NCBI GenBank assembly: GCA_965202585.1
Contig: OZ241830.1
Location: forward strand, 63,550,001-63,614,000
Length of the DNA stretch: 64,000 nucleotides
Direction: 5' to 3'
DNA from: Thalia democratica
Taxonomy: Eukaryota
Below, piece by piece: positions 21,645 through 64,000 of the stretch. Position numbers and translations under genes: made by a program. The stretch's first letter is position 1. Each line of letters begins with the position of its first letter. Below the pieces are notes generated by a model. It did not search any database and had not been told where the DNA came from. It saw nothing but the letters and a program-made list of their open reading frames with translations.

Positions 21645-22433
21645 CTGTTAGAAGTTTAACAATATTGTTAACCTTTAATTAAGCTTTTACTTGTGATGGG
21701 TATCTTAATAATATTTTTCTGTTTAAAATATTTGTATAAATAGTTGTATGGTTTGAATGTTTCAAGGACTTTAAAGATTAATTTAAATAGTTATAAGCAC
21801 TAAAGTTTCATATAAATGAAACAGTTTGAATACAGTTCACAAGTAGGTAATGTTCATAATTAAAATTTTCCAAAAATATCATTATTTAGTCTAGCTACAT
21901 GAGAAGCAGTATTATACTTATTCAGTTAAATAAAACAAATAGATGACTTAAGAAATACTTAAACTGGTCATTTTTGCGACTTAAAACTGCTTGAAATTTA
22001 TAGTTTGGCCATAACAACAATATTTTCATTAAAAAAATATGCTTTGTTATGTTTTAAAAAACATTATGTTTTGTTAATTACAAAAAAACAAAGTTGTATG
22101 TTGGAAACATTATTTAAATTGTATCAATGAAATATGTGACATTATAAGTCAAGTTAATGTTAATGTAATAGTTCAGTGTTTAGACAAAAAACCAGTAAAT
22201 AGAGTTGACATATTTTGTTTGTTTATTGAAACATTTTACAAATATCTTAATATAATAATGGTTTTGTTTGAGCAAAATATGTTTCTAAGTAAAATAAAAA
22301 AATCAGCTTTTAGATTCAAATTTGTGCACATACAAGTAATAGTTGTGTGAGAATTATAATAGAAATTATTTATTAAACTATTTGAACTTTGTTTCAAAAA
22401 TGTTCTACAAGAGTTTTTTTGTAACATAAAAGT

Positions 22434-22760
22434 AGTTATGTCATAAATGTTTTTATAATTGCTTGTTTGTTAAGCATTCACTCACTACGCACAATATGGC
22501 TTTTTGTTTTATACCTGCTTCAAAAGTTTTACAACAATGAACTAACTAGTTTTGGCAAATATGGCAAAACGATTCAAACTAAATTATAACTAAAATGTTA
22601 AAGAGTTATGTCATAAATGTTTTTATAATTGTGTGTTTGTTTAGCATTCACTCACTATGCAAACTTTTTTTTCTACCTGCTTCAAAAAGTTGTACAACAA
22701 TGAACTAACTAGTTGTGGCAAATATGGCAAAACGATTCAAGCTAAATTATAACTAAAATG
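22434..22760 (+). repeat. Two-unit tandem repeat, period ~170 bp (also about 49630-49958)
   Basis: agttatgtcataaatgtttttataattg...aaattataactaaaatg begins at 22434 and at 22604. Confidence 0.9.
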
Positions 22761-31700: not shown

Positions 31701-34700
31701 ACCATTATAAGTAATTGACAACATAGACAACATTATTAATGTTTAAGTAACTAATAAAGGTTAAATTATTTTTATTTTTTATCTTTTTTATTATTTCTTG
31801 GTTTAAAGCTTTTAATAAAGTTTAGGTTTTAAAATAGACATCATATTAATGTTAGTAAACTAGTAAACTGTCCATTTTATTAGTCACTTAATTACAAATT
31901 ATTACCCAAAGGCTTTTAAATGTTCTTAAGTGTTAAGATGACGTAACAATCAAGTTACCTGACTTTAGTTTTATTTATTCATTCGCTTTTTGTACTAAAA
32001 CATTATCAAGTCTATTTTTATCTTTCCTATAAACTGTTTAGATTCTATCTTTAAAATGAGGAAGTTTTCTAGCTATTCATGACAATCAAAACCTTGTAAA
32101 AATCTACTTAAACTTGCATTAAATGATAATAATAATAACAATATACTTACTTTACGTTTATCAAAGTTTAAACCTATAACTTATCTTACTAGTTACTAAT
32201 GAACTAATGATATATATTGTATTGAAGTTAACTGTCTTTGAAAGGTATAAAAAGCATCAAAGTGTGTCTAATGTTGTATTTATATACTTTTTTTAAATTC
32301 ATCCATGGTACTGTGCTTATTCCAATAAAATATTTTGGGTCTCATTGATAGTTGTCAAGCTTTTTATTTTAGGCATAAGCGCTACAAACTTGTAAACAAT
32401 TTAACAATATAATAAACTAATTAAGTTATATTCATTTAAATTATATTGCTCGAAAACATGGTGTTTTCATGTGGAATGATGGCGTAAAGGTCATCTCTCG
32501 TGTCTTTTGGTACAGAGACCCGAGTTCGAGCCCTCGCTGCATAACATTTCACCAACATAATTTCTTTCATTTTAAACTTTGTTAGCTTAGTTGTAGTTCT
32601 TATTTTTTAGTTGATGGATCAATTTATATTGAAGTGTGTAACTCATAAACACTTTAATTTCAGAATTGTTTTAAAATACCGAAAAATATTAATTAAATTA
32701 AGATATATACTGGCGTTTACATAGACAAACTTTTTGATTTGGTAACATTTAAATTCATATCTTTATTTTTGCTTTGTACAATGTTAGTCTGTTTCGAGTA
32801 AAGGTTAATGATATAATATATTAACACCAATAACAGCTTGTTCAAATGTATAGTTTTTTTTACGATTCTTTATGATTGCATTTTGATGGTTTGTTTTTAG
32901 CTAAGAATCTACACTTAAAATAGTAAACACTTTATTTATCGAAATCATAGTCACCAAATGGTAATAAACTTTTTTTTTTGGTTTTATTTTACTTTTGGTT
33001 GCAAAACTGTTACTAATAAGTTTGTAAGTCTTAGTGATCCTAAAACTATGTTCTTTTTCGATTAGTTCATTAAGTTGGTTTTATTAAAAATTTATGGGTC
33101 AGCGCAAACAGCATATGCTTGTTAAATATGCAATCGATAAATACTTTTCTATTGGATGTCTATTTAAAGTTTTAAATATTTAAGAAACTCATGAATCAGA
33201 AATCACAAGCTGTAAGCTTCAGTAACACACAAGGATCTAATCTTTATCAACGCCGATATGAAGTCGCAATTGAACAACTTTAAAAAAAAATAACTATTTT
33301 TGGTTGTACTAAAATACTTTAGATTTTACAACCATTAAAGAAAAACAAGTTATAATAAAAAAAATTATCATAAAAATAAGTTAAGTTTGTTAAATTCCAC
33401 AATAAGTTTAAATCAGTTTAAATCTTAAAAGCTACTTCTTTTATTTCAATTAAAGAGCAAACTTATTTATTTAAATTTTTTACTTTTCCTACTATATCAT
33501 TTTAAACTTGATCCTTTTAAAATAGATTAGAGATGGGTAACGTTTTGTATTTATACTATTTTATATGGTATTGTATACTTATTTGTCTATTAGTTTGGTA
33601 TCTATAATATTTCAGCGCATGTAGCCCTTTTTGGTAAAAAACTCTGTTTTAAATTTGTTTTTACTTTCAATGTTAGTTTGAAACTTAAACTTACATATTA
33701 GCGTGAACACATCTCTAACATTAAAATTCTAGTTTGAATAATACCTTGAAAACAGAAAGTCCTCCAATTAAAGGGACACGCTTCGTTCCGACCCTAGCAA
33801 AATTCCCACCTTTATATTCCTCGAATCAAATAAGCTGACAAGCAGTCCGGTGGCCGAGTTTTTAAGGCGGTGAAATCGCAATCCATATTTAATGTGTTCG
33901 AATCCGACATGTGTCAGACTTTTTGGTTTCTAACCTGTCAATTTAAAATTACTTGCGAGATGTTATTCTGTGTGTATGTATAAATAGAGCTTTAAACTAT
34001 TTTTAAATAACAATTTAATGGTTAACTATAATTAATAAAATAAAAATTATCAATGTTTAAATTTGCCTCTTAGGCTAGTTGTTTATTTTTGAAGTTTTTG
34101 TTTTTTACTTTAGTTGACAAGTTATATTTAAATATAGTTAAACTAAACTTTTTATGGTAGTTAGTTTTTTTCCCAAGGTAAAATGTTCACTATTTATTTC
34201 TTTGCAAAAACTTAAGTTAAGTTACAAACGAGATTCATTCAAATTTCTTTAAGCCTTTTTTTTTTGATAATATATTCATTATAAATATAAAGTTTAATTT
34301 AGACCTCAAGTTAAACAATTTACGATATACAATCAAGCATCACAAAATAACCTTTAAATTTAAATTAAATTACAAACAGGATTCATTCAAATTGCTTTAA
34401 GCACATTTATTTTATAATAACATACTATTCATTGTAAATATAAAGTTTAATTAAGACCTCAAATTAAACGAATTATAAGATGCTCCATAATCAAGTATCA
34501 CAGTAGTTTGATTTTGGATGCATTACTTAATAAGAGTTATAATGTGGAATGGGTAATTTTACTTACATCTAAACGTTAGATCTTTAGAAATCTATGCATG
34601 TGTTTGTTTAAGTGAAGCAGTTGTTTACAAATTTAGTATTTTTTTCCTTTATTTTTACTTTATAACGTAACTCATTCTACAAGTAATCCTACTTTGAGTT

Positions 34701-34956
34701 ATCTTATCTAATTACTCTACATCTAATTTAATTAAAAAACTATGTTTATTTCCAATATAAATAAATATTTTTTTTCGCTTATAATAGACTAGTGTAGTTT
34801 TTTATAATTATACAAACTTCTATAACTTTTCTCTACTTAAAATAAACACTTTTTTTTGCTTACAGATACTTTTAGCCGCTTATAATTAATTCGTAGTATT
34901 AAAAGTTGTCCAGTTTGTTTCTTATTCTTTGAAAACTTCTTTTGTTTTAGTTATAA

Positions 34957-41563
<6,607 letters not shown>

Positions 41564-44612: not shown

Positions 44613-47355
44613 CTATATGTCTTCAAAATCAATTTTCTTCAGCAGCCTCTCCAACTTGGTCACAGTCCACTTGATTTTTTTCAGCAGCTTCTTGTCTTCT
44701 TCCAACACCTCCTTCTTATCGGTCTTTTTCGGCAGATCCTTCAATTTACTCACCAAATCCTTCGTCTTCTTAACGACTTCCTTCTTCTTCAGATCCTTGG
44801 TTTTCTTCACCTCCTTGTCCCTAATTTTCTTGACGAGATCCTTCTTCACTTGAAGATCTTTGGTAATCTTATGTTCAACATCAATACCATGTTCAATTGC
44901 AACAGTTGTCTGGTTGGTTGCCACGGGAGTCGTCGTTGTGACGGTGGCGCCCTTGCCAACGCAAACCTGACCCGCGGGGCACTGGCTCATGGAAGCCCCT
45001 CTCGTGTACGGGAATCTCCCCATCCAGTTACCGGCAGGCCCGTAGTTGCAAACTACGTACTTAGCGTTTTTGTAGGTGCTTGTGGACCTTTCTCTTCTCA
45101 GCAGGGGGCACAACTTGATGGCGCATCCGACTGCGTAGCTGGAATGCCACACAATCTGTGAAAAAAAAAAAATAAATTGATGTTTAATTTAGTTAAAAAA
45201 ATTTATAAAGTGTTTAGGGTTAAAGTAGCAATGAAAATCTAAAAATGTTAACGGTTTAAAAATAATTAATAATATTTACCGTTTAGTTTCTGTGACGTGT
45301 TAACAAGTAAGAAGTTAAACTCAAAGTAATTATGCAAATTAAAATCATTTTCTAAACTGTAACGTATGAATAATGAGTGTATAATTATCATTTAAGATTT
45401 AAATAAATTTAAATACTTTTATAGAAGAAAATTTGTGCATGTAAAGTTCCTTTTTATGTCTCCTTTTTAAGTTTTTAGTTGTGATTTCATAAGCTAATAA
45501 TCTATGAAGTTGTAAATGTAAATAATGTTTTTATAAAACTTAGGTTCGATTTATATTTTTTTGATAGTTTCCACATTGTAATACTTTTTTTGAGTACACT
45601 TACAACATGAAAGTTTACTTGTTTAACTGGACTCATGTAAATATGTTTCAAACAAACCTGAGTGTAATGTCCACATTTCTTACCGGGTTTGCACTTTCTA
45701 GTGTAGTAATTGTAATCTTTATATTCTTCACCCCAAAGCATGATTGCTCTTTCTATGTTTTCCTGTTTATGGTTTCTTATTACCAACATATAGTTTATTT
45801 TAAATTAAAATTTTCTAAAGTTTGTATTTATAGACTAGTTCGTATATTTGAAACTGATTTTTTTTTTCAATGCTTAACTTTTAAACAAAGTATAACACTA
45901 AGCCTATAAGGTTTGTTAAAATAAAGTTTTTATTCTATTTCTTATGAAGTGGTGGCTACAATTTTCTAGCTTAAGTCGGTTAATAAAGTAAAGATAAACT
46001 GTCATAAAGGATAAACGAAAACTTTGTATCCTCAATGTTTATATATGTATGAACACCAAACCACCTTTTAATCATACTACTTATGACTAAATAAGTTCGT
46101 CAAAATGAAAAATAAAAAAAAACTGTTAAAAATTTGAACAACAAAACTTTATATGTAAATAACAAAATATTTTATATTTTAAGCATACTATTTTTATACA
46201 AAGCTCGTTTATTTTAATACTTTAAAAAAGCTTTATAAGTGTTTCAATCAATACGTTTGTTTTTTATCTAAAGTGCATTGTAAATTAACTAAAACACAAA
46301 TTTAATTAAGTTTAAAAAACAATAACAATCAATGACAAAAAAAGGTTTTATAAATGTTTTAATATATTCTGAGTACTGGCAGTGGCACAAAAAAAAACAA
46401 ATCTTTGTTATTGCTTATATTCATACAACCGAACTACCTTCCAAGTTTGAAATAAAAAAGTATTTTTATAACAAGCTTGATACTTTAAATGATATAAGAA
46501 AGCTAATGTCAGCTACCTTGCCAGTAAGCCTGTTGATGCTGAAGTAAATATTCTCGCCGTGCATTTTGTATTTTGTGGTACCCGCGTGCTTGATGTGTCC
46601 GTACAAGCAAGTGCTCGCGTGCAATCTCGTCAAACCTTCGAGTTCCTTGTCGTACTTCATCTTCAACATGTTAATCGCTTCTGGTTGAACCTTAAATTTA
46701 TATATATATATATATATTATATACATTTCTAAGATATAATAGACCGTGGTAGATTGGGTAAATAATCTTTTAAAACATTTTTTTTATGTTTTACTATTTG
46801 TATTTAATAAAAATATAAACTTTTAACTTTTTGAAAATATTAACTTTGTGGTTTAATCAGATGTTTAGCAACATATGATTTTCCTCACTGACAATTACAT
46901 TATATAACACTTAAATAGTTTGAGGAAGATTTTAGTGAACTTGAAACAGTCAACACTTCTAGAGTAAGTTACTGTAGATTATCATTAAAAGCTACGAAAA
47001 TTAATTTGAAAAAAAAAACTCTGATTGTTTGATTTAAACCATCATAGTATTTACAAAGTAACTACCACAAAAAGAATTTTAAACTTTTATACACGTGTAC
47101 TTAACAAACCTCAGCCCTCCACTTGTTGTGAGCATCCACGATGCTCTTCTGTATGTCTTTGGTGATCACCTCGGATATCTTGGGAGCGGGAGTTGGCCGG
47201 GCTTGAGGCCAAATAAGAGGATTCCTCCTGTTCAGCATCCTCCTCGTTGAGGACCTCCTTGTGTAAGAGGGATTTCCCCCAGACCAGAAGTTGTTCACCT
47301 GCATCTGGCGGGTTGCAGATGTCAGGTAGAGTATGAGTATTGTTCTGAGTAACAT
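44613..47355 (-). CDS. Secreted CAP/SCP protein with Lys-rich tail, copy 2 (355 aa)
   Basis: Exons 47355-47110, 46690-46517, 45762-45658 and 45155-44613. Intact, with 4 amino-acid differences from copy 1 (A/T, E/K, T/I, A/T). Confidence 0.93.
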
Positions 47356-50300
47356 GACGTGTTAATAAAATTCTGCAAATGGAAAGAAATGTTAGAACTT
47401 TCATTATTTTTTTAGGGACAGGAGGTCTTCGTTTATATCTGTTAAACAGCAGTGCTAAGGCGGATATAAGTTTAAGGAGTAAGATTGTTTTCAACTTAGG
47501 TTGCTCTTAAAAATACTTTAAAAATTTTACCTTTAAAAGGTTGTTTAAACATTAAAAAAAAACATTTGGTTATTTACCATTCATGTACAAAAGTAAAATT
47601 ATTTTTTATCAAAATTTTACAAAACCTGATGTTTTTTGTAAAGTTTTGTAGTCAAAATGGAAAACATGAGCTAAAAAAGTTGATTTGTCATCACTAATAG
47701 CACCAGTTCATTCACAAAATGTAAAGAAAGTAATTTAGTGAAAACAAGAAATAAATTTTTATAAAATAAAGTTTTTGGTTAAAATTTCTTTATTGGTTTT
47801 TACAACTTTAAGACCTAAGTTGATTATGTACTTAGTTTGAATGGATATTTAACATTTATTTAACATTTATTTAAAAAGCATATACTAAACTAAGTTAATT
47901 ATATGAATTATCTATGATTATCTTGAAAGTTTTTAATTAACAAAAAAAATATTAAATATTTTTACAACCAATAAAGTTTTGATGAAAAACTTAAATGCTA
48001 CAATAAACTGGTAAAAATTATAACAAACTGTTCCATTTTATAAAGAAGCTTTTTATATTTTATAAAGCATTAAAATCTAAAGTGTGCAGCATGAATTAAA
48101 AAATATATAATTTATTTTAGAATTACAACAAGAGCTTTAGAATAAAAATGATAAACATAAAACTAATATTAGAATAACATAAGTTTATATATTTAACTTA
48201 CCAGTTTTATTTAGCTTGAAAAAGCATAGGTATTACACAAGTAATCAAAAATAAAAATAAAAGCTTAATGAATCCATCCTACTTCTTTTTTATTCAGCTT
48301 AGAAAACTATATAAAATAAGGTCAAATTGTGAAAAAAGTGTTTTAACCCCCCTATGCCCTTCAAAAGTATACGTTTCAGGGTTTATTTTTAGTTTAATGA
48401 TAAGTTCAAGGTTAAAAACTGTTTAAAGTTGTATAATAACATTGAAAAAATATTATGTTGTAAAATATATTTATTATCTAACCTGTTGCTTGTTCGTTCA
48501 AACATTTTTAAAATGTGATAATATAATGGTGGTTATGTTTGATTTAAAATATGATTATATATCATAGTAAAATAAACAATAGTAAAATCCAGCAGACAGA
48601 TGTTACAACTTACTGTATGAACTTGTGATAAAGTAAAATAAATTAAAAAAAACTCACTTACAAAACTTCTTGTATGAACTTGGGTCACTCACTCCTATAT
48701 CTCAACTCAAATTCAGAAGGAATTTCATTTTCAAAACTAGGTGATTGCTTCAGATCAGCCTTCTCACAATACCATACATAGAAGAAATCAAAAGAGTTTT
48801 TGGTGATGACATTTATAATACATTTTCTGTTAGAAGTTTAACAATATTGTTAACCTTTAATTAAGCTTTTACTTGTGATGGTTATCTTAATAATATTTTT
48901 CTGTTTAAAGTATTTGTATAAATAGTTGTATGGTTTGAATGTTTCAAGGACTTTAAAGATTAATTTAAATAGTTATAAGCACTAAAGTTTCATATAAATG
49001 AAACAGTTTGAATACAGTTCACAAGTAGGTAATGTTCATAATTAAAATTTTCCAAAAATAGACATTATTTAGTCTAGCTACATGAGAAGCAGTATTATAT
49101 CAATACTTATTCAGTTAAATAAAACAAATAAATGACTTAAGAAAAACTTAAACTGGTCATTTTTGTGACTTAAAACTGCTTGAAATTTATAGTTTGGCCA
49201 CAACAACAGCTGTAATATTTTCATTAAAAAAATATGCTTTGTTATGTTTTAAAAAACATTATGTTTTGTTAATTACAAAAAAACAAAGTTGTATGTTGGA
49301 AACATTATTTAAATTGTATCAATGAAATATGTGACATTATAAGTCAAGTTAATGTTAATGTAATAGTTCAGTGTTTAGACAAAAAACCAGTAAATAGAGT
49401 TGACATATTTTGTTTGTTTATTGAAACATTTTACAAAAATCTTAATATAATAATGGTTTTGTTTGAGCAAAATATGTTTCTAAGTAAAATAAAAAAAAAC
49501 AGCTTTTAGATTCAAATTTGTGAACATACAAGTAATAGTTGTGTGAGAATTATAATAGAAATTAGTTATTAAACTATTTGAACTTTGTTTCAAAAATATT
49601 CTACAAGAGTTTTTTTTGTAACATAAAAGTAGTTATGTCATAAATGTTTTTATAATTGCTTGTTTGTTAAGCATTCACTCACTACGCACAATATGGCTTT
49701 TTGTTTTCTACCTGCTTCAAAAAATTTTACAACAATGAACTAACTAGTTTTGGCAAATGTGGCAAAACGATTCAAACTAAATTATAACTAAAATGTTAAA
49801 AAGTTATGTCATAAATGTTTTTATAATTGTGTATTTGTTTAGCATTCACTCACTATGCAAACTTTTTTTTCTACCTGCTTCAAAAAGTTGTACAACAATG
49901 AACTAACTAGTTGTGGCAAATATGGCAAAACGATTCAAACTAAATTATAACTAAAATGAGTTTGCAAAAGTTAAATGTAACCAGATGCAATTAAAGACTT
50001 GAAGCTAAATATAACAAATCTTATACAAGTTGTTAAGTGTTAAACATCTTTAAAACAAATAAAAAACAATTTCGTAAAATTTAGAGTTAAGTACTTAATT
50101 TATATACTTTTACAAATTGTAATTTTATGATCACAATGAATTACTGTAGCTTAAATATTAAATAATATGTTCAACCAATTATCACTAATGCAGAAAAAAA
50201 AAGTAGATATTAAGAAAGACTTTGAAAAGAATAAATTAAAATGAAAATAATATTTTATTCTTTACCAAAAAAAATATTTAAGGTTTAACATAATGTAAAG

Positions 50301-52889
50301 TATTTTACGTTCGAAAAAGCTAAAAACCACCCTGCTATGCTAACATAGTGTTTCAATTTGTAGTTTTTAATGAATTCTGTAAAATCTTACATTTTATTGT
50401 GACATCACAACAAAATAGTATTTTGCAAAATTAAATTTTTCAATGAATATTCTTTTGAGAAAAGCACTTGTAGTAGTAAGAGCTCTGGATGCTATATGTG
50501 TAAACTTTACCTTTTTTTTCTTTTTATACTGTTTATGTGAGCTTTGTAGGACACTTTAGCAAACTTTATTTGATTTTCAATGTTCTTGAAGATCAAACTT
50601 GATGATTGTTGCTCATTTTATCTTCAAAAATTCTTATATTTTTTTATTGTGTGAGTAAGTCTAAGACCTAGTTTGGGAATCAACAGTCTTGAAAGTTGAT
50701 AATCTAATTTATTTTTCTCATGCAAAACCTTTGAAACAATTCTTTATTTTATCTTCTAATTCATCATGCACTTTATATTTACAAGATCAATTGGCTACTT
50801 ACATGATGCTAAAACAAATCATCAAGAGGCTTTAAAAACTTGCATCTCAGTGTTTTTAATCTTTGAAACATCATTGTAAAGTGAACTGGGTAGAAAACAG
50901 CTCAAAAAAAACTTTTGAACCTCTGTAAAGTTTTATAACTTTTGAGCTTGTTTCAAAGCCTTTGTCTTTATAAGTTGTAACTGTGACTTTACCCTACTTG
51001 CAGAGTTTAGATCACACTTTTTTCGGATTCTGATTGGATGATTAGTACCTACTACAGCAGCTGTTGAGGTTAGTTTGTTAAATAGTTAGTTAGATTGTTT
51101 TAATTTGTGCAAAACTTAGTCTTTTTTTGCCAGCCAGACTAGTTGAATATTCAGTTACAAAGTTAAGGTTTTTTGGATATTACAATAAATGTTAAAGTTT
51201 TATACTTTCTACTCACTAATTGTTAAGACGTTTTGTAACTATTAAATTTTTTGAGTGCTCATGCTTGAATAACATTAAGTTTTGCACAAATTCAGACTAG
51301 CATTTCTATTCATAGAGTTGTAACCTTGGCTTCATTCTCCTAAGATCACTAGGCTACCTTAAAATAAAACTTAAATAAGAAAATAAATAGAATTATTAAT
51401 GTTCACTTGTATAAAGAAGTGTTTTATTCATGAATGAAGCCCAAAGAGACAGCAAGCTATATGTAGAAGTTTATTTAGAACATAACATTTAAATTCTGAT
51501 TGTATTAATGTAGTTTATATATTCATAGAACAATAATTTGTAATAAGAAGTACTTCTTAAGTGTGCATGAAACATAATTAGTAAGAGTAATTATAAAACA
51601 AAGTGTTATTAGTTTCATTAATTAAATTTTTTCAAAAGAAAACAGTTAAACCATATAAGGATTAGGTTTGCTAGTAAAGAAAATGTTCCAAAGTTGTAAG
51701 TTTACAGCCATATACTTACAAAGCAGTTCAAAGCAAGCAAAATTTAAAAGTTGTTAGTGCATATGTGTATGAGGTTTATTCTTATCTATGTTTGTATTCT
51801 TGTATCACTAACTTCTTTCTTTTCTGTTATCTACCAATAATTTATTTGTTCATGGGTTTGCACTAATAAGCTTTTGACAACAACTTGCTGTACTGTTTTT
51901 TATGTATATGAAAATGTAAAGACTAAATTTTGGGAATAGTACAAATATTAGCTTAATAGAGCCATGAAAATTCCAAATGATGTTAAATGCAGAGTATTTA
52001 AGATGCAAGTAACTTTAAAATTAACTACATGCCACCAAACATATGTTATTGACACAAAGTAGTATGGTTTAATTGTTTTAGTTTGAAACAATGTGTTAAA
52101 AAGATGTACTAAAAAGATAAATTGAAATCAGCAAACATCTTTAATTTGTATGCAAACTTTAAGAAATAGACAATAAAATGGCTTAATTGAATGATTGAAA
52201 CACTAAGCATTCAAAGTTTAAGTATGTTAGTAAATATATAAAGTAAATTAAAGTATAGTAGTTAAAAAAATAGTAATGGTAGTAAAAGTGCATGAGAACC
52301 TATGTATTTAATAGACTGCTAGATAAATACTTAACAATGAGACCAACTTAACTATCATGGAAAACTTTAGCTTATGTAAATTACATGACATTAAAATGGT
52401 ATACTGTAGTAGGAACAGTATAAAATTAAGGTAAAGAAAAATATATACAATTGAAATGCTTATTGAAAAAAATATGTTTACTACTTAAATCTAAATAATT
52501 TCAACTGTTTAGTTGAATCTTAAGTGTTTATTTATTTTTGAATATTTTAAGTTTTACGCTGTTTTTAAAAGGTTATCTAAGTAAAATACATAAGCACAGT
52601 AATCAATTTACATAAGCAAGTTAAGTGACTATTGCTTGAATAAACATAGAGTACAGTTCAATCATATAAATAGGTTTGTATATGTACACATCTAAAAAAT
52701 TTGTTGTTTCATATTAATTTTTCTCTTTTTATTAGGTTTATTTTCTGTCATTAAAAAGTAAACCTATCTATGAGATTGATGAACTGTTTTCTATGTATAT
52801 ATAAAGTATTAGGTAATTAACTATGAATTTTCATTTAACTTAGGCTCTACTAAACCATAACTATTAAGAGTGTGATTTTAACAAAATAA

Positions 52890-53640
52890 ATACATCTAAT
52901 AGGTACGCAATCTAATAAGTACGCACCCGCATAAGGTACGCACTAGTTTTTTAATAACACATTTTCAGTTGCAATCAAAGGTCTTCTTTAAGGAGTACGC
53001 ACCCGCATAAGGTACGCACTAAACTTTTAATAACACGTACTTGCATTAAATAAATATGTTATATAAAATAAGGTACGCACCCGCACAAGACACGCTCTGA
53101 ATTTTTAAAACCCATCACCCATTTTGAAAAAATGGGAAATCCCCCAAACCAAAAATGTGGTGAAATTTTTTGATGGAGACTATTTAAAATTATTTTTTAA
53201 GGCATAAGAAAATTTTTTACCTTTTCCTTTTCTCTTTTTCTTTACGGCCTATTCTCTTGAAGGCCCTCTTTTTCTGTCAAGTAGACCGTGAGTAGCGTAA
53301 CTGCCAAACAAATATACGTTATTGCGTTGTATTTGTACGGTCTTTATCTGTTATCTTTTACTAACCTTGAGCTTATGTGATCTAATTCATTGATGTGAAG
53401 CCATTAAAGGCCTGACGGTAATATCGGTTGATAGTTTTTTAGTTATTGACTGAGTGGTTTTGTATTGATGAGTTTGAAAGTTAAGTTTGAGGTAGCGGAC
53501 AAGAATTAAAAAAAAACATCGAAGGGCTACGGCCGGTTGATGACACGGTGCTTCGCACCTGTCATCTCCCCGGCCTGCCCTTAGTTTTTTTTAAATTCTT
53601 GTCCTTTAGGCCCGGTTACTCTGCTGGTCGGCACCCCTTT
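52890..53640. repeat. Unclassified GC-enriched element with a GTACGCA motif array and long fold-back structures (complete in copy 2; 53040-53580 missing in copy 1)
   Basis: GTACGCA at 52903, 52919, 52936, 52995, 53012 and 53073. Nested inverted repeats at 53497-53604. Copy 1 (about 25685-25875) joins aataacacgta directly to ttagttttt. Confidence 0.7.
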
Positions 53641-56600
53641 TAGTTATGACTTGGATGTACGAGTAAATGTGCTAGTACTTTTAAGTCATGACTGAATTAA
53701 ATTTTAACTTTACTAGAAGTTAAACTATCTATTATAATAGCTACTTTCACTCTCGCGTTGTATTTAAGGTAACAGATAAAACCAGTACAATTACTCCTGA
53801 GCTTAAGTAGATTACTTACTGAGTTTTAACCGTCACTAGTGTTAAAAGAGAAAGAAGTGGTTGGGCAAAAATTATTAATAATAAATTGCATTCTTAGCAG
53901 TACAAATCCATATACTTTTGTAAGTACTGTATGTATATCACTAATAGAGAAACTAAGCAAAAGTTTTCCATTTACATAAGTAAATTTTTATGTCTTAATT
54001 TGTATAAATAAATTTTGGCCATCTTTTAAATTAAACACTAACAAAATCCTATTTTTGTCCATAATTTTTCATTTAATTCGTTAAGATTTTAGTTTTTTTT
54101 TTATTACCTATTATTACGTCATAATCCAGTAGTCTCATAAAGTGTTATCTTACTAGTTTTCCTTTTAATTATAGAAATAAGTACATTACAAGTATGTATA
54201 AGACAATTGTGCTTTTTTGGAAACTAAACTTAAATTTTGTTTAATGCAGACAGTGCTATCACTAACTATCTATGCTAATCCATAACAAGCTTTAGATACT
54301 ATTTTGTTTAATTAAATCTTAGTTTAAAGTTCTTTATACTGCATGGACAAAGTAGTGCAACTCATGTATTATGAAACAACAACATTACTAACACTAATTA
54401 TATGTGCATAATGAATACTAGATAGTTTGTGCTTCAATTAGATTTTTACATATTTATATATACGATAATGAACTCATAATCATTTAATTTTGTTATTTAG
54501 TTATGATTGAATACTTTTTATCTTGAAATGAAGATCACCAGTTTAGTCTAAATTACCAAGTTTATCACTTAATTCGTTGTTAGTGATCCCTTTTTTGTTT
54601 TTTTTTAGTGTCTACATATCATTAAAGCTTGTTCAAACTACAGCTAATATCATTGATTATCATCTTGTTGCGGTGGTTTATTAGATTATTTTCAAAGTTT
54701 CCAAAAAAACTGTGTTTACTAAACTTATAACTTAGACGGATAAGCTGTTTCTTTTCAGTAATACATCCCTACTATCTTTCCTCTATAATCTGTTTTCCCA
54801 ATCTGTATCCAATGAGTTTTACGCAGAGTTTGTTTTTTATTGTTAAGTAAACCAAATAGTTACAAATTGATTAAACGATTACCAGCTTTATACTTTTGTT
54901 TTTCAATAACTACCGTTATGCCAGTTTAGTAACTAACTATTTTTGATGTCTTAGAAACTTATCAACATAAATTTTTGTAGCTTTATATCTCGTTATTTAA
55001 GCGTAAGTTCTTATTTTTCTTTATAAGGTTGTGTATACCATACATTATATTAGTGGTACTTTTATTTGACAACGTAAACTTGCTGTCAATGAAATTGAAA
55101 AACAAAAAATCTCTTTGTCCTTTATTTTAATTATTATTCTTTTGCATGTATGTATTTATTATGTAACATTTATTTTTCTTGTTTAATACTATTCATGTTT
55201 TTTTTAAATGAAGACATATTGTCTATTTAGAAAAGAAGGGTAACAGTTTTCTCTAAACTGTAATGCGGCATCATGTAGTTCTGCCTTATGTTTTTTAGTT
55301 TGTTAACAAGTCAATCAAAATTAACTAAATTAAATTCTGTATTTATCTTCACAATTATGAAAGTTAACTAATTTTCTCTGTTATTTTTCTTTGCTTTTCC
55401 GATTATTGATATTTTTTGTTTGTCACCAGTGTAATATTTAATTTAGGCAAACGTTCATTGGCTCTCGATTTTTAAACATACACTTGCAACATACTTGTTT
55501 AAACAAATTGCTTTATTTACCAATTAATTGCACAAACATGTGATTTCAGCTTTTAATAAACCAACGTTAAAAAAATAAAAACAAATTATTCCTTTATTGT
55601 ACCGTTTAAAAAGTATTCAGTTATGGCAACAGTGGCTCGTAAATTTTCTTCAATTTTGTCACTATTTACGTTGTTGCGTTCATTTCAATTAATATAATTA
55701 TTAATATTGGTTTAGAATATAACAAAACTTTGGGTATTGTTGTAAATTATGTCTCATTCGTGATTAAACACACCTTATTCTCAACAAGATTAAGAGTAGA
55801 TCCAATTTTGTATTTTAAGTTAGTAGCTCAGCATCTGTAAAATTAATTAAAAGCTAGTTTAAATAACATTTTATACGGTTTCTCTTTTAAATCAATAGCA
55901 TTTGTTTATAACTCTAAAACGTTATTACATTTCTATTTTGTAGTTTCGTATCTAATTCTACTTTTAACCCTAAGTTAACAAAAGGCTGAATAGATCTTCA
56001 TTTACATTTTTTTGTCTTAGTTTATCGAATGTTCTCTACTAAATTCAATCTGCTATAAAATAAGTAAAAACAATTCAAATTTTAATTGGCTTCTAACTTT
56101 ACGTTTTATTTAATACTGTTGTTTCACTGGTTTGCGAAACTAACTCAGTCATTTTTTATTTCAGAAGTTTTTTCTTTCAAACCTACAGTATATGCAAGAA
56201 CATACGTTAGATTTTTATCAATCTGTGCTTAATATCAATTTTATTAAACCAGATGATTACGGATGTAACAGTTTTTTCCATTAATTTCATTGATTTAACT
56301 TCATAACGTGTATCAAAACTAGTTTTATGGCTTTAATTTTTTTTTTGTGTTAAAGTCTGTTGTAGTTGCCTTGTTTGTTATTTATGCTTGCGAAGTATTA
56401 CTTTAAATTTTTAGTTTGGCATTTATGTTTATGCTATAAATTTTTACTTCTTTGGCTAAGTTTAACATTAGATCATTCAATTTTGTTTAAGCTACTTGGC
56501 GATTCTTTTACGTTGTTTTACAAACTTTTTGTTTCTTCATAAGTGTGGAATTTATAAGTATATTATGAATTTTCTTGTTTAATTTTTTTGATAACCCGTT

Positions 56601-56762
56601 TAAAGTAGGTAAAAGCCTTAAATTTTAGCTACATCCTATTGGTAAAAATACTTACTTAAGTATTACAATAAAGTTAGTAGATTAAACTTGCTTTCCGACT
56701 GAAGTACTAACTATTTTGTTGTATAGCTTGCTTTTACTATAGAACCATACAAACATAGTTGT

Positions 56763-59700
56763 GCTAACACTTATGATATATTACAAAATTAATTCATTAC
56801 AATAACCATGCAAAGCAAATAAAGTTTAAAAAAATGATTTAAAATCAAAACTACCAATTAAGTTCAAATTTCTCATAATAAACGTCTTAAATTACCCACG
56901 TAGAATTAAATGCTTTATTATAGTACGAAAGTTTTTTTTTTGTTCATTTAATTTAGGTGTTTTAGTTGAAATTTATGTTTGTCTTACACCCAATAATATT
57001 ACGTCATTATATAGTCTCATTAAGTATATAATGTTTCTTTAAATTTTAGTAATATATGCTTTAAGTGTCCAAATGTATGGATGAAGAGCTTCTTTTAATG
57101 TTTTATTATAAACCATTCACGTTCTTGTTTTTTCATTTTTGTTCGTAATTTAGTTTACTATTTGGTTGGTTTGATTTTGGATGCATTAATCAATAAGAGT
57201 TATAATGTGGAATGGGTAATTTTACTTACATCTAAACGTTAGATATTTAGAAATCTATGCATGTGTTTATTTAAGTGAAGCAGTTATTTACAAATTTAAT
57301 ATTTTTTTCCTTTAATTTTACTTCATAACGTAACTCATTCTACAAGTAATCCTACTTTGAATTATCTTATCTAATTACTCTACATCTAATTTAATTAAAA
57401 ATTATGTGTATTGCCAATATAAAATTCAATTGAATAAAGCAAATGTTCTCTATATCTGGTTTTTAAACTTCTGCAACGTACTTGTTTAAACGAATTGCTT
57501 ACCTTACAAACTATTTACTAGAGATTTTAGTTTTAAATGAACCAAATTTTAATAAGCATTTAGCGTTCAATTGACGTATTTTTGTATTTCATACATAATG
57601 GTTTTGTCTAAGTTGTATTTTTGGAAAATATGTCAATAAAGTTGAAAACATTAAAACAAGTACTACATTTTGAGTTTTATGAAGTCTAAGCTGTTTGGTT
57701 TAACAATGCCTCTAAGTAATATATATGTTTCAATAATTAAAACAGTTAACAAAATCCTTTGTTATGTTTTATTGTCCATCTTTTCTTAACGATTCTGAGT
57801 TTGACTATTCATACTTCTTCTGTTTATCACCAATATAAAACTTGATTAGGCAAATGTTTATTAATTCTCGTTTTTAAATGTCTGCGAGTTTTACAAATGT
57901 AACTACTTCGTTGTAGCATTCATTGTAAACAATGTAGTTTTTTTATCGGATAAGTATTGGCTTTTTACAAAACTTGGAAATGGTTCAAAAAGGAGTTTTA
58001 ATAATGCTTTATTTCTTCCCTCTCAACGAAATTAGATCATATTTTAGTTAATGTTTCACTGTGGAAATTTTTAAAAGTTTGTGTATAAAAATGTTAGTAT
58101 GGTTTCTTATGAATTTATACTATAGTTTATCTATAAGTCTGATTTGTTATTATACTTTAAATTTATTATTTCATAATTTAATTCTACTTTGATAAATCTC
58201 GGTTAAAAAGTGGTTTCTGGATTTAAAAGTATGTTTTACTCAATGATTTAATTTACCTTAGCAATACTAAAGCTTTTATTTACCACTTCATTGTTTTGTT
58301 GTTGTTGTTGTTACAGTAAAACTGTTTTAAGGTTTGTTTAAAAATTAATCTACGGGTTTTCTTTAATTAATGTTGTTTGTGTATAAGTCTATTTTGCTGT
58401 TATATTATGTTTTTATTGTTTCGTAATCTACATCTGGCCCAAGGTTAAGTAAAGACTGAATATAGTTATGTATATTTATATTTAAAATGATTTTGTATGT
58501 TTTGGAAATCTAATAAGGTCGTTAAAGGTAGGATAAACATTGATTTATAAGTGAATAAAACTCTTGGATTAACTAAAATATATGTTCCACTCTTACCGAT
58601 TTTAAATTGTATCGAATTTTGCATTTTTAGATAACATATGATTTCTTATGACTGTCAAGTTATTTAAACTTTTGTTCAACCTGAACTAGTAGTGTTTGTT
58701 ATTGAGAGTTAATGCTGTTTCGTATTTAATTCTACTAACAGCCCAAAGCTAATTAAATACTTAACAGAATTTTATTATTTAACATATAGGTTTAAACTAA
58801 ATGTAAAACTTAATGTTTTATAGTATATATCCTTGGTGTTGTACTATGAGTGGTATAGTTTTATAGTAGACAACCTTGGTATTATTCTATAAGTAACACA
58901 ACAGTTTTGCGTTGTAGTTTAATTTATCAGTATCTATTGTAATTCATATTGTTAAATTACTTCATTTTATTTAATGCTAAGTCTCATAAATAGCAAATAA
59001 ATTTTTAGTTTAGTATTTAACTATCTTGTAGACTGTTTGTTTATAAAAGTTAGTTAAAAGTTGTTCATGTCACTATTTTAATTTAATTACAATTAGCCAT
59101 ACTACGTGTTATTTGTTTTACTTAAAATTTATACCACATGGATTTATTTGACAACAATAAAAACAATTTTTTAACAATTTTAAAACAGTTATTGTAAATA
59201 AATTTGTTAGAGTTAGACTTTAGATATTGTAATTTAGTGCGAAATATGTCATATAAGTATCAAATGATAAAACAAGAGTTACTAACTAAAATAACTGTCA
59301 TTCCAAATATATCACAGTTCGTCTATTTTTAATGTTCAAGTACACCTATAAGTCTTGTTTTCGCGTATACTTAAAGTTAATTATGTCACTATTTTAGTTT
59401 AATTACAATTTATACTACTTGTTAATATTTAAACAAGCCTTAGCTCTATATCACCATCATAAGTAATTGACAACATAGACAACATTATTAATGTTTAAGT
59501 AACTAATAAAGGTTAAATTATTTTTATTTTTTATCTTTTTTATTATTTCTTGGTTTAAAGCTTTTAATAAAGTTTAGGTTTTAAAATAGACATCATATTA
59601 ATGTTAGTAAACTAGTAAACTGTCCATTTTATTAGTCACTTAATTACAAATTATTACCCAAAGGCTTTTAAATGTTCTTAAGTGTTAAGATGACGTAACA

Positions 59701-62700
59701 ATCAAGTTACCTGACTTTAGTTTTATTTATTCATTCGCTTTTTGTACTAAAACATTATCAAGTCTATTTTTATCTTTCCTATAAACTGTTTAGATTCTAT
59801 CTTTAAAATGAGGAAGTTTTCTAGCTATTCATGACAATCAAAACCTTGTAAAAATCTACTTAAACTTGCATTAAATGATAATAATAATAACAATATACTT
59901 ACTTTACGTTTATCAAAGTTTAAACCTATAACTTATCTTACTAGTTACTAATGAACTAATGATATATATTGTATTGAAGTTAACTGTCTTTGAAAGGTAT
60001 AAAAAGCATCAAAGTGTGTCTAATGTTGTATTTATATACTTTTTTTAAATTCATCCATGGTACTGTGCTTATTCCAATAAAATATTTTGGGTCTCATTGA
60101 TAGTTGTCAAGCTTTTTATTTTAGGCATAAGCGCTACAAACTTGTAAACAATTTAACAATATAATAAACTAAATAAGTTATATTCATTTAAATTATAATG
60201 CTCGAAAACATGGTGTTTACATGTGGAATGATGGCGTAAAGGTCATCTCTCGTGTCTTTTGGTACAGAGACCCGAGTTCGAGCCCTCGCTGCATAACATT
60301 TCACCAACATAATTTCTTTCATTTTAAACTTTGTTAGCTTAGTTGTAGTTCTTATTTTTTAGTTGATGGATCAATTTATATTGAAGTGTGTAACTCATAA
60401 ACACTTTAATTTCAGAATTGTTTTAAAATACCGAAAAATATTAATTAAATTAAGATATATACTTGCGTTTACATAGACAAACTTTTTGATTTGGTAACAT
60501 TTAAATTCATATCTTTATTTTTGCTTTGTACAATGTTAGTCTGTTTCGAGTAAAGGTTAATGATATAATATATTAACACCAATAACAGCTTGTTCAAATG
60601 TATAGTTTTTTTTACGATTCTTTATGATTGCATTTTGATGGTTTGTTTTTAGCTAAGAATCTACACTTAAAATAGTAAACACTTTATTTATCGAAATCAT
60701 AGTCACCAAATGGTAATAAAATTTTTTTTTTGGTTTTATTTTACTTTTGGTTGCAAAACTGTTACTAATAAGTTTGTAAGTCTTAGTGATCCTAAAACTA
60801 TGTTCTTTTTCGATTAGTTCATTAAGTTGGTTTTAATTAAAAATATATGGGTCAGCGTAAACAGCATATGCTTGTTAAATATGCAATCGATAAATACTTT
60901 TCTATTGGATGTCTATTTTAAGTTTTAAATATTTAAGAAACTCATGAATCAGAAATCACAAGCTGTAAGCTTCAGTAACACACAAGGATCTAATCTTTAT
61001 CAACGCCGATATGAAGTCGCAATTGAACAACTTTAAAAAAAAATAACTATTTTTGGTTATACTAAAATACTTTAGATTTTACAACCATTAAAGAAAAACA
61101 AATTATAATAAAGAAAATTATCATAAAAATAAGTTAAGTTTGTTAAATTCCACAATAAGTTTAAATCAGTTTAAATCTTAAAAGCTACTTCTTTTATTTC
61201 AGTTAAAGAGCAAACTTATTTATTTATTTTTTTTACTTTTCCTACTATATCATTTTAAACTTGATCCTTTTAAAATAGATTAGAGATGGGTAACGTTTTG
61301 TATTTATACTATTTTATATGGTATTGTATACTTATTTGTCTATTAGTTTGGTATCTATAATATTTCAGCGCATGTAGCCCTTTTTGGTAAAAAACTCTGT
61401 TTTAAATTTGTTTTTACTTTCAATGTTAGTTTGAAACTTAAACTTACATATTAGCGTGAACACATCTCTAACAATAAAATTCAAGTTTGAATAATACCTT
61501 GAAAACAGAAAGTCCTCCAATTAAAGGGACACGCTTCGTTCCGACCCTAGCAAAATTCCCACCTTTATATTCCTCGAATCAAATAAGCTGACAAGCAGTC
61601 CGGTGGCCGAGTTTTTAAGGCGGTGAAATCGCAATCCATATTTAATGTGTTCGAATCCGACATGTGTCAGACTTTTTGGTTTCTAACCTGTCAATTTAAA
61701 ATTACTTGCGAGATGTTATTCTGTGTGTATGTATAAATAAAACTTTAAACTATTTTTAAATAACAATTTAATGGTTAACTATAATTAATAAAATAAAAAT
61801 TATCAATGTTTAAATTTGCCTCTTAGGCTAGTTGTTTATTTTTGAAGTTTTTGTTTTTTACTTTAGTTGACAAGTTATATTTAAATATAGTTAAACTAAA
61901 CTTTTTATGGTAGTCAGTTTTTTCCCAAGGTAAAATGTTCACTATTTATTTCTTTGCAAAAACTTAAGTTAAGTTACAAACGAAATTCATTCAAATTTCT
62001 TTAAGCCTTTTTTTTTTGATAATATATTCATTATAAATATAAAGTTTAATTTAGACCTCAAGTTAAACAATTTACGATATACAATCAAGCATCACAAAAT
62101 AACCTTTAAATTTAAATTAAATTACAAACAGGATTCATTCAAATTGCTTTAAGCACATTTATTTTATAATAACATACTATTCATTGTAAATATAAAGTTT
62201 AATTAAGACCTCAAATTAAACGAATTATAAGATGCTCCATAATCAAGTATCACAGTAGTTTGATTTTGGATGCATTACTTAATAAGAGCTATAATGTGGA
62301 ATGGGTAATTTTACTTACATCTAAACGTTAGATCTTTAGAAATCTATGCAGTTGTTTATAAATTTAGTATTTTTTTCCTTTATTTTTACTTTATAACGTA
62401 ACTCATTCTACAAGTAATCCTAATTTGAGTTATCTTATCTAATTACTCTACATCTAATTTAATTAAAAAACTATGTGTATTGCCAATATAAATAAATATT
62501 TTTTTCGCTTATAATAGACTAGTGTAGTTTTTTATAATTATACAAACTTCTATAACTTTTCTCTACTTAAAATAAACACTTTTTTTTGCTTACAGATACT
62601 TTTAGCCGCTTATAATTAATTCGTAATATTAAAAGTTGTCCAGTTTGTTTCTTATTCTTTGAAAACTTCTTTTGTTTTAGTTATAAATGTTAAAAAATAA

Positions 62701-64000
62701 AGGAAGTACTACATCTGAAAAATTAAACGACGAGTTTTATGACAACTATCTTGATGAAAAATCGGCAAAAGAAAAATTAAAAGAACAATTCATTAGAGTT
62801 ATGAAAAGTCTAAGGTACGTTTTAGCGTTACTATTTTTAAAAGCGTTTTTAATTTTTACTTGATAAATTAATACAAAACTTTGTTAAATAAGATACTTAT
62901 GCAATGCTGCTTATACTAATTCCTTTTTTGTTAGTTCTATTTAAAAAAAACTTCATCTCTGTATATAGCACAACTAGTCTACATTCTAAAATAACTATGA
63001 CCACTGTTATGTTATGAGCTACAAGGTTTTAGATAGATTCTAAAAAAACATAATTTTTTAAATTTATGCTTAAACAAGGTCTTTAAATAAGTTATCAATC
63101 TATATTGTACGAAGATAAATTCTTTAATGATTAAATTTAATTCTGGAAAGAAAACTAAACTGCATACTTAAAAGATAATAATATTATATTTAGCATATTT
63201 ATTATTTAAAAAGTACTTTTTTAAATTTTTATATCTAAATTTGTTTAGTAAAACTGGTACTCTAAAAAAAGAAACTAAAAATGAAATAAAATTGATCAAA
63301 GGAAAACTGATTAAGGAAGAAAGAGTAGAAAAAGGATCTGTTAGTTCTATGTTTATTATACTTATTTCAGTTAGTTTTTTTTTTTTTGTAAAAATAATGA
63401 AAAATATAGCGATGCGTATTTAAAAACTAAACAAAAACAAACATTTTAGACAACTATTTATACGCTTTTGCTATAGTTGTTAAGAATAATCGTTTTTTTT
63501 TTCTTTATCTGAAAAACTTATGACCAGGTGAAACTGTCCTTGCTTACATCGTATATCAAAGCTGTAGGAGTATCGATGTTTTCCATTGTTCTTACTACTG
63601 AATTTTTGTTCCAGGTTTGTGCTGCCGTAAAAAAATATAGTATAGTAATTAATAAATTTACAATTCATATTAAGTTATTAAAAAATAGATTTACATAGTT
63701 AGTTTTTGCAAACTTTTTTTCCTGACAACCATTTAGTTTATGGGCAGAGTTTTTATTAAGTTATAATGCAAAATAAATACAGATATTTTAACTAGAAAAC
63801 TATAGTTTCAAAAGCGAATAAATTAAAAATCATGAATTTTTGCATGAAAAATAACTTCCTTTTAAACTAACCCATGACCACTAATTTTTCATTATAACCA
63901 TTAATTTAGAAAAAAATCAGTTCCAGCTACTTTAAACTCTCCGTAACATATGAAAATAAGTAAATAAACTTTTGAACAACTAAAAAGCTTACATGCATTG
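56763..64000. repeat. Tandem segmental duplication, copy 3 (truncated by the window end)
   Basis: Colinear with about 1-7290 of copy 1. Confidence 0.97.
62687..63614 (+). CDS. ABCC: ABCC fragment, copy 3, first three exons (continues beyond the window)
   Basis: Exons 62681/62703-62814, 63249-63339 and 63528-63614 are homologous to copies 1 and 2, with the frame open. Confidence 0.85.

Follow-up and report, generated by a model that had tools for sequence, protein, structure and literature searches.

The subject of this report is a 108-nucleotide (nt) fold-back in the genome of Thalia democratica (assembly GCA_965202585.1, 800 Mb with nine chromosome-scale contigs). It lies at positions 53497-53604 of a 64,000-nt stretch of contig OZ241830.1, which we call the window (C6:63550001-63614000 in our contig numbering; GC content ~26%). 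A preliminary description of the window proposed that this fold-back was the terminus of a rolling-circle-type element or else a structured RNA. The feature is real, strongly non-random, and unusually conserved, and it was wrongly framed as an element terminus. It fits better as one helix within a non-coding module, undescribed so far and rich in hairpins, that is present once per unit in gene-carrying tandem arrays. Going by sequence and predicted folding, we give a probability of roughly 45% to the reading that the fold-back, termed hairpin B (HP-B), is one helix of an undescribed structured RNA that would be transcribed from the + strand of this module.

In the proposed RNA, the module would be transcribed from the + strand and act through its structure as four consecutive hairpins, HP-0, HP-A, HP-B, and HP-C. 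HP-B would serve as a rigid, very stable rod, and a closing helix may enclose HP-0, HP-A, and HP-B. The module is the conserved centre of a multi-kb repeat that is poor in open reading frames (ORFs), with nearly always one module per array unit, and the arrays grow through ordinary tandem duplication and unequal exchange. RNA production and selection on the fold are what we infer from the observed anatomy, copy number, array context, conservation gradient, and strand- and RNA-specific folding. The module and its parts are as follows.

53270-53697, + strand as proposed sense: conserved non-coding module, 92% mean column identity in a 15-array alignment (A1)
53283-53343, + strand: HP-0, local 5′ hairpin (GACCGU...ACGGUC), -19.9 kcal/mol, z score -3.1
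53361-53495, + strand: HP-A, long imperfect hairpin with 52 pairs, 16 of them G:U, and a branched tip
53497-53604, both strands alike: HP-B, the reported 108-nt fold-back, with 44 predicted pairs and a 3-nt loop; best-conserved part of the module
53605-53638, + strand: linker between HP-B and HP-C, with a near-invariant GC-rich segment at 53608-53635 (AGGCCCGGTTACTCTGCTGGTCGGCACC) and then a variable U-rich stretch
53639-53696, + strand: HP-C, 3′ hairpin of 58 nt with 25 pairs

Folding and conservation of the module

The anatomy first reported for HP-B is borne out by the sequence. Positions 53497-53517 and 53584-53604 form 20 of 21 possible pairs; the nested arms AAGGGC/GCCCTT, GGCCGG/CCGGCC, GATGACA/TGTCATC, and GGTGC/GCACC are each found; and the 3-nt loop sits within GCTTCGC at 53550-53556, which is GCGAAGC on the minus strand. 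Folded as single-stranded DNA (ssDNA), HP-B reaches -37.9 kcal/mol, compared with -10.8 ± 2.6 kcal/mol for 200 dinucleotide shuffles, none of which was as good (z -10.3). Folded as RNA, it reaches -60.7 kcal/mol on the + strand (z -11.5) and -61.8 kcal/mol on the minus strand (z -11.2). The fold is real and far outside chance.

Variation within HP-B is limited in kind. In alignment A1 it varies by a T/C substitution in the loop, by a T/C substitution and a C/T substitution or deletion of 1 nt within internal loops, by the loss of 3 nt from a bulge, and in the lengths of its A and T runs. Tracts of A9 and T9 border the GC-rich core. The outer stem has one compensatory change, G:C to U:A in copy L021, and an A:A mismatch that is private to the window copy. 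The loop reads GCTCCGC in many copies (GCGGAGC on the minus strand), and this sole loop substitution falls on the free N position of the minus-strand GCGNAGC mini-hairpin motif. Loops of this type are very stable and occur at origins and priming sites of ssDNA phages (PMC13037366). That source supports the stability given as background in the preliminary description and makes no mention of Helitrons, to which the description had extended the motif.

The hairpins on either side of HP-B fold differently according to strand and molecule. HP-A reaches -42.9 kcal/mol as + strand RNA (z -5.7), -15.3 kcal/mol as minus-strand RNA (z -1.85), and -5.2 kcal/mol as + strand ssDNA (z +0.16); HP-A is stable only as + strand RNA. 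For HP-C, the + strand RNA has a folding energy of -27.7 kcal/mol and a z score of -7.8, with z scores of -3.9 for the minus strand and -5.7 for + strand ssDNA. The earlier suggestion of a structured non-coding RNA or a long hairpin resembling a microRNA precursor (pre-miRNA) divides in two: the structured half gains from flanking hairpins whose folding is + strand-specific and of RNA type, and the pre-miRNA half is at odds with the geometry.

HP-0 has an alternative fold in which its 5′ strand (53283-53305) pairs with the linker (53610-53636) as a long-range closing helix, for which the GC-rich linker segment is the candidate 3′ strand. This helix of 19 pairs was chosen by the alifold consensus; of 1000 shuffles, 11 gave a duplex energy as low as or lower than its -24.4 kcal/mol. 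On the 3′ side, the homology of many copies fades or ends right after HP-C, with BLAST alignments stopping at 53688-53706 in many loci. A sliding scan of the 9.6-kb core in segments of 120 nt found the strongly structured ones gathered at 53461-53700, the 3′ half of the module, on a grid that cut HP-A in two. It returned one more structured segment, at 58801-58920. The stretch around the latter, 58790-58930 (~31035-31175 in the previous unit), belongs to core segment A downstream of the module (listed below); as + strand RNA it folds at -38.2 kcal/mol (z -4.0), and it scored about -5 on both strands in the 120-nt scan.

Conservation was assessed in 16 arrays, one representative each, with 15 sequences in alignment A1; all are paralogues from one genome. 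Mean pairwise identity is 80.7% at 53060-53269, 90.4% at 53270-53496, and 97.5% in HP-B, followed by 84.9% at 53605-53697 and 47.8% at 53698-53850. Invariant runs of 20-45 nt are also present in alignment A1 outside HP-B. Despite ~10% divergence, 16 of the 16 arrays retain the HP-A fold, with + strand energies of -42.9 to -53.7 kcal/mol (z -4.7 to -8.8); minus-strand z scores range from +0.2 to -3.5. The HP-C fold is kept in 13 of 16. Relative to column-shuffled alignments, the alifold consensus has z scores of -7.6 (+ strand) and -1.4 (minus strand) for the left block and -3.7 and -1.8, respectively, for the right block.

The substitutions themselves are consistent with maintenance of the pairs. 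Scored on the structure of the window sequence, 25 transitions at paired sites of HP-A preserve the pair and 2 give A.C; when HP-0, HP-A, and HP-C are pooled, 41 preserve the pair versus 5 that do not. Pair composition predicts ~65% pair-keeping, which by our own arithmetic gives a binomial p of ~0.001 for HP-A. In the alifold structure, 98.2% of cells pair, compared with 34-47% in slid controls. In 500 shuffles, the observed percentage of paired cells, the covariation score, and the count of double-change cells were never attained; the number of double-change pairs was attained in 11 of 500.

A number of observations weigh against a selected + strand RNA. Genuine covariation on both sides of a pair is rare, with 5 pairs and 8 cells; in HP-A, 17 paired-site variants, either transversions or alignment shifts, disrupt pairs; and the alifold structure was derived from the same alignment on which pairing was scored. 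Common descent and gene conversion between paralogues inflate the apparent conservation. Strand-biased mutation (A to G, C to T) could mimic G:U enrichment; such a bias would itself imply transcription. HP-B, being strand-symmetric, is uninformative on strand or molecule. The module is partly or wholly lost in some units of arrays that are otherwise intact, as in copy 1 of the window and in the 5.5-kb units on C4, which are truncated inside HP-A. No promoter, terminator, or processing signal was identified, a bacterial-style terminator and promoter scan was uninformative, and internal runs of T6-T9 argue against a full-length RNA polymerase III transcript. The module also matches no Rfam family: a scan of the whole window, a check that had been proposed with the first description, gave 0 hits at the gathering threshold, and at E values up to 10 the region 52500-54500 gave only three chance-level hits (E 0.8-4.8).

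ARAGORN found no tRNA or tmRNA in the window. An Sm site in the U-run between HP-B and HP-C was rejected, as the run varies between arrays. A spliced-leader RNA gene was rejected as well: the 16-nt spliced-leader sequence is absent from the module, and a match with 2 mismatches occurs once per unit, distant and on the minus strand. These 16-mers, at 3302-3317, 32316-32331, and 60068-60083 (3 hits versus 0.33 expected), are probably a repeat-borne coincidence.

Tandem arrays that carry the module

The preliminary description took the hairpin to be ancestral from a surviving right arm in copy 1, the preceding unit of the window. That arm is present (25816-25839, TTAGTTTTTTTTTAATTCTTGTCC), its reverse complement is identical to the left arm of copy 2, and genome-wide counts show the full hairpin to be ancestral: the right arm with its 3′ flank has 230 exact-pattern matches, the 45-nt core of HP-B has 204 matches at up to 3 mismatches, and a 28-nt linker motif has 257 at the same threshold. 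The copy counts (~230-257) are pattern counts rather than a curated census. The combination that the preliminary description had named as fatal to its feature, an unexpressed single copy without compensatory changes, is not what we find; the sequence is multi-copy and has the one compensatory pair change in L021.

Module copies are located on C1, C2, C4, C5, C6, C7, C8, C9, and many small contigs, and arrays on at least seven chromosome-scale contigs. Most copies are regularly spaced, nearly always with one per tandem unit, and a few seem solitary. Unit spacings include 925, 4,387, 5,522, 22,248, 26,218, 27,842, ~30,200, and 33,579 nt. The shortest is the period, 925 bp, of a pure 36-unit satellite (C8:6348869-6381705) that adjoins the macro-array on C8; each of its units holds the 28-nt linker motif, and the HP-B right arm where listed. 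Exactly constant or near-constant spacing over 3-5 units was observed at C5:6394323-6472937 (26,178-26,218 nt), C6:77118321-77185135 (22,248 nt), and C60:11052-122447 (27,842 nt), which implies very recent expansion or possibly collapse or expansion in the assembly.

Units from different arrays have little in common other than the module and its surroundings. Whole-unit comparison of arrays on C9, C8, C4, C6 (67.5 Mb), and C1 with the window found only the module block, parts of core segment B, and core segment A in common, and the ABC-transporter region of the window unit is missing from all five. By Pfam, the cargo ORFs of other arrays encode a calpain (C9), RRM and PARP domains (PARP14-like; C1), and a BACK-kelch protein (C6, 67.5 Mb). 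The C8 unit has extended homology with the C1 unit, and Pfam matched nothing in the C8 ORF that was tested; the 5.5-kb unit on C4 is approximately module block plus segment A and lacks any ORF of at least 60 aa. How far the common core extends varies by array, with clustering by array pairs, and the unit junctions differ too, that of the C4 5.5-kb unit cutting the block at the equivalent of 53401, inside HP-A. No common termini of the shared core were found among the compared arrays. The features of the window outside the module are as follows.

49800-53269, + strand: core segment B, ORF-poor, upstream of the module; partly common to other arrays at 76-84% identity
56855-59320 (29098-31561 in the previous unit), + strand: core segment A, downstream of the module; found in the C1, C4, C8, and C9 arrays at 76-85% identity
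34772-62501, + strand: complete unit, junction to junction, with ABC-transporter 3′ half, minus-strand gene, segment B, module, and segment A
34940-41128, + strand: cargo, an ABC transporter represented by its 3′ half, with exons for the transmembrane and nucleotide-binding parts (Pfam)
34761-34772, + strand: unit junction, where ABC-transporter intron sequence meets an incomplete second copy of a 256-bp segment A piece
25816-25932, + strand: truncated module of copy 1, reduced to the linker, HP-C, and the 24 nt at the 3′ end of HP-B (end projected via a 27,765-nt offset)
53040-53580, no strand assigned: 541 bp present in the copy-2 unit and deleted from copy 1, one deletion end falling within the HP-B right arm

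By self-BLAST, the units of the window's own array repeat with periods of 29,005 and 27,757 nt and are 97-99% identical to one another. In the cargo, Pfam recognizes ABC_membrane at 37705-37917 (E 9e-07) and ABC_tran at 40883-41128 (E 3.9e-07). Exon-like ORFs on the minus strand at 44613-47494 have a lysine-rich tail and, by eye, CAP/SCP-like motifs that Pfam did not confirm: of four tested, none matched CAP/SCP, three having no hit and one a sub-threshold hit to DUF1978. A segment of ~1.8 kb, 16950-18727, is present only in the first unit, and part of it (16950-17153) is found again at 18460-18663 as a direct repeat of 204 bp. About two monomers of a 157-bp satellite lie at 34208-34502, just upstream of the unit junction; the same satellite forms two abutting arrays of opposite orientation in the C1 unit (L044 ~1300-5300) and short arrays in the C6 67.5-Mb unit.

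An ordinary tandem duplication, one of its breakpoints lying in an intron of the ABC transporter, gave rise to the window array in place, because the leftmost unit of the array runs upstream into a unique exon of the same ABC gene. The segment at which the ABC portion starts has four copies (C6:63535320, 63555764, 63584772, and 63612502), and directly upstream of the leftmost (L053) come a coding exon that is unique, a GTAAGT donor, and ~20 nt of intron. The truncated ABC gene is therefore not a captured fragment of an inserted element. The 256-bp piece occurs twice per unit (405-659, 5498-5753, 29414-29668, 34506-34761, 57169-57423, and 62258-62492) and lies inside segment A in other arrays; the placement of its second copy suggests that the original duplication breakpoint was inside a second, partial copy of the core. 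At the edge of this array, the only edge that was read, the junction overlap is at most a short T-run, and the distance to the hairpin is ~18.7 kb.

HP-B is itself a site of rearrangement. Self-BLAST pairs 25816-36272 with 53581-64000 and 18728-25815 with 45915-53039, such that the deletion in copy 1 stops within the palindrome; its junction reads ACGTA|TTAG, with microhomology of no more than 1-2 nt. In the array of 33,579-nt period at C6:67.53-67.63 Mb, the interior of HP-B is inverted relative to its flanks (L047-L050; C6:67530264, 67563843, 67597422, and 67631001), and the left arm is short by 12-13 nt (ATT and the A run). This change is identical in four of four units, and we read it as a single inversion or template-switch event.

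Alternative explanations

The main rival to the RNA reading, and one that we regard as unlikely, is an element that works at the level of DNA. The palindrome, as a cruciform or ssDNA hairpin, and its conserved flanks would serve in cis as a site for promoting or maintaining tandem amplification, whether as a replication origin on unit-length circles, as a re-replication origin, or as a break or recombination hotspot. Such a site would fit the placement of most of the ~230-257 copies in tandem arrays, with at least four different gene cargoes and the 925-bp satellite of 36 units in addition. It would also fit a hairpin that folds as DNA and alike on both strands, with A9/T9 tracts around its GC-rich core, a sole loop substitution on the free N of a motif of ssDNA phage priming sites, and a record of rearrangement in both the copy-1 deletion and the one array with an inversion and a 12-13-nt arm deletion. 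However, much of the conserved block would be unexplained by a DNA hairpin, because HP-A, which is conserved in all arrays, is unstable as ssDNA (z +0.16) and on the minus strand. Also against it, the one edge that was read is an intron junction 18.7 kb off, with at most the short T-run in common, and unit junctions are not the same from array to array.

A further reading, in which the module is an amplification cassette, seems improbable to us. Here a structured RNA or DNA element would seed, spread, or stabilize 20-30-kb tandem gene arrays, for example as an origin for the replication and reinsertion of unit-length circles or as an RNA that shields arrays from silencing or collapse. If true, one non-coding element would be behind the expansion of ABC-transporter, calpain, PARP14-like, and kelch genes.

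Equally improbable, in our estimation, is that the hairpin has no function and is a neutral quasi-palindrome in a repeat family, its appearance being due to recent spread, arm correction by template switching, and gene conversion. All of the evidence is paralogous, and individual units tolerate loss of the module. Palindromes can self-correct their arms by template switching, and this process would also yield the single compensatory change in L021. Self-correction maintains the complementarity of the arms, however, and cannot halt drift between copies, and HP-B divergence is ~8-fold lower than that of the adjacent flank in 16 arrays that otherwise differ by ~19%. Neutrality would also leave unexplained the invariant non-palindromic stretches and why 16 of 16 arrays retain the G:U-rich HP-A fold.

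A precursor of small RNAs is a somewhat poorer candidate still. A polycistronic transcript could be diced at HP-A, HP-B, and HP-C to give microRNA (miRNA)-like or endogenous small interfering RNA species, and the module does have several adjacent long hairpins on one strand, in multiple copies in tandem units. HP-C, with 58 nt and 25 pairs, is of pre-miRNA size, the stems of 44-52 pairs could give one or two duplexes each, and the top, non-significant Rfam hit to HP-B is mir-235 (21 bits versus a gathering threshold of 75; E 0.82). In animals, however, a primary miRNA has a stem of ~35 bp and a loop of at least 10 nt, and neither HP-B, with its 3-nt loop and 44 predicted pairs, nor HP-A, with its branched tip, resembles one. 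Conservation spans loops, bulges, and linkers and is not focused on 22-nt arm segments. A let-7-like octamer, UGAGGUAG, precedes HP-B in only some arrays; one of its bases varies between arrays, and we treat this seed match as coincidence.

The other reading offered by the preliminary description, a Helitron-type or rolling-circle terminus, fails each defining feature that was tested and is largely refuted; we consider it very improbable. On this reading HP-B would act as a subterminal stop signal at the 3′ side, and rolling-circle copying would have left the arrays as concatemers with captured host genes. In its favour, head-to-tail units hold different, captured-looking gene fragments such as the truncated ABC transporter, and the hairpin is GC-rich in AT-rich DNA. 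A Helitron ends in a hairpin of ~16-20 nt located 10-12 nt upstream of a 3′ CTRR, begins with a 5′ TC, and inserts between A and T without a target site duplication (TSD). HP-B is 108 nt instead of 16-20 nt and is internal to a conserved block, at least 90 nt away from any break in homology: in all copies examined the homology extends at least 220 nt upstream and ~90 nt downstream, and in most it goes on further. No CTRR boundary or TC end is shared across the aligned copies; the absence of a CTRR end and of a TSD, noted from the start, holds in the copies examined. A genome search for copies, as first suggested, gave the ~230-257 pattern matches; common boundaries and target sites, the other half of that suggestion, did not emerge.

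The coding content of the units likewise gives no support to a rolling-circle element. The earlier proposal to look for linkage to Rep/helicase or reverse transcriptase ORFs yielded none in the units examined. In a Pfam search of the longest of the ORFs of 90 aa or more in five array units and the window unit, no Rep/helicase was found (a genome-wide scan for one was not made); the results were confined to ABC, BACK/kelch, calpain, PARP, RRM, or no match, and no transposase, Rep/helicase, or reverse transcriptase turned up among the long ORFs of the compared units. The ABC gene was not captured, given that the leftmost unit joins a unique upstream exon. Among the copies read, zero are in an unrelated flanking context, and the boundaries vary by array.

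Other mobile or viral elements can be set aside briefly. HP-B is not an independently inserting miniature inverted-repeat transposable element (MITE), because no copy was found in an unrelated context: flanks homologous to those of the window are present in 30 of 30 loci with the hairpin and in the best 40 upstream-block matches, and as a MITE or foldback element it was rejected for flanks (GGTAGC|...|TTTAGG) without duplication and for occupying the same site of the module throughout. A rolling hairpin (parvovirus-like) or hairpin-telomere flip-flop was rejected on orientation, with 230 copies in one orientation and 4, all from one array, in the opposite. The CRESS/geminivirus nonanucleotide was rejected as TAATATC in HP-A sits outside the loop of a GC stem. 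The 10-mer TTAAGGTAGC that precedes the hairpin in several arrays (A1 columns 236-247, ~53487-53496) equals the core of the R2-cut 28S site; no 28S/R2 match was found in the window with a 21-nt R2-site pattern at up to 3 mismatches, nor any Rfam large-subunit rRNA, and with no longer 28S match there the 10-mer was taken as a coincidence. No match to a described transposable element family turned up, with Dfam and Repbase outside the search. The exact pattern of the hairpin core had 0 hits in IMG/VR and JGI metagenome contigs, and no described equivalent was found in the literature on salp and tunicate genomes.

Comparison with known systems

What the module would mean depends on whether it is transcribed. 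If it is, a chordate related to the vertebrates would possess a new structured RNA of ~350-430 nt, present in many copies and with an architecture outside Rfam. If it is not, a long palindrome has stayed nearly unchanged across many chromosomes in surroundings that are ~20% diverged, a pattern that would suggest a part in replication or recombination at the level of DNA. Both outcomes allow the Helitron reading to be discarded. The module marks at least 15 tandem arrays, roughly 5 Mb by our estimate, that multiply unrelated host genes, and it may offer a handle on how this genome builds many gene arrays of 20-30 kb.

Several known systems share single features with the module. Like the 3′ hairpin of a Helitron, HP-B is a GC-rich hairpin in a repeat that is linked to gene fragments and has tandem copies, but it is internal and six times longer, and neither an A/T target site nor dispersed insertions were seen. 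It resembles foldback elements and palindromic MITEs in being a near-perfect 108-bp palindrome with 21-nt outer arms and differs from them in having no TSD and in that all ~50 copies with readable flanks lie in the same module. Template switching in a quasi-palindrome accounts for the one inverted array and possibly for the compensatory change; as a mutational mechanism, it leaves the conservation of the module unexplained. The minus-strand loop, GCGAAGC or GCGGAGC, is that of the d(GCGNAGC) priming sites of ssDNA phages and plasmids (PMC13037366). Those cases are short motifs on single-stranded replicons that are recognized by primase (PMC13037366), whereas in the window the motif closes a stem of 44 pairs within a repeat on a chromosome, and the conserved hairpins beside it fold essentially only as RNA, on the opposite (+) strand.

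Repeated miRNA clusters and arrays of non-coding RNA genes are comparable in organization. In the tandemly repeated miRNA clusters, such as C19MC of primates and the Sfmbt2 cluster of rodents, hairpins lie within repeat-derived tandem units and are amplified along with their flanks, as they are here. The hairpins of the module have a different, non-miRNA geometry, with a 3-nt loop and stems of 44-52 pairs, and its units are larger by about an order of magnitude and contain genes. Arrays with one non-coding RNA gene per unit include the human 6.1-kb RNU2 array, the RNU1 clusters, and the 5S arrays. The module differs from these in that it belongs to no Rfam class, its units range from 0.9 to 34 kb and hold varied host genes, and no promoter or 3′ box was recognized in it. 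The arrays described here have the head-to-tail units and high identity within an array by which satellites and macrosatellites are known and, like the RNU2, RNU1, and 5S arrays, they combine a short, conserved, structured non-coding segment in each multi-kb unit with a faster-evolving remainder, in hundreds of copies.

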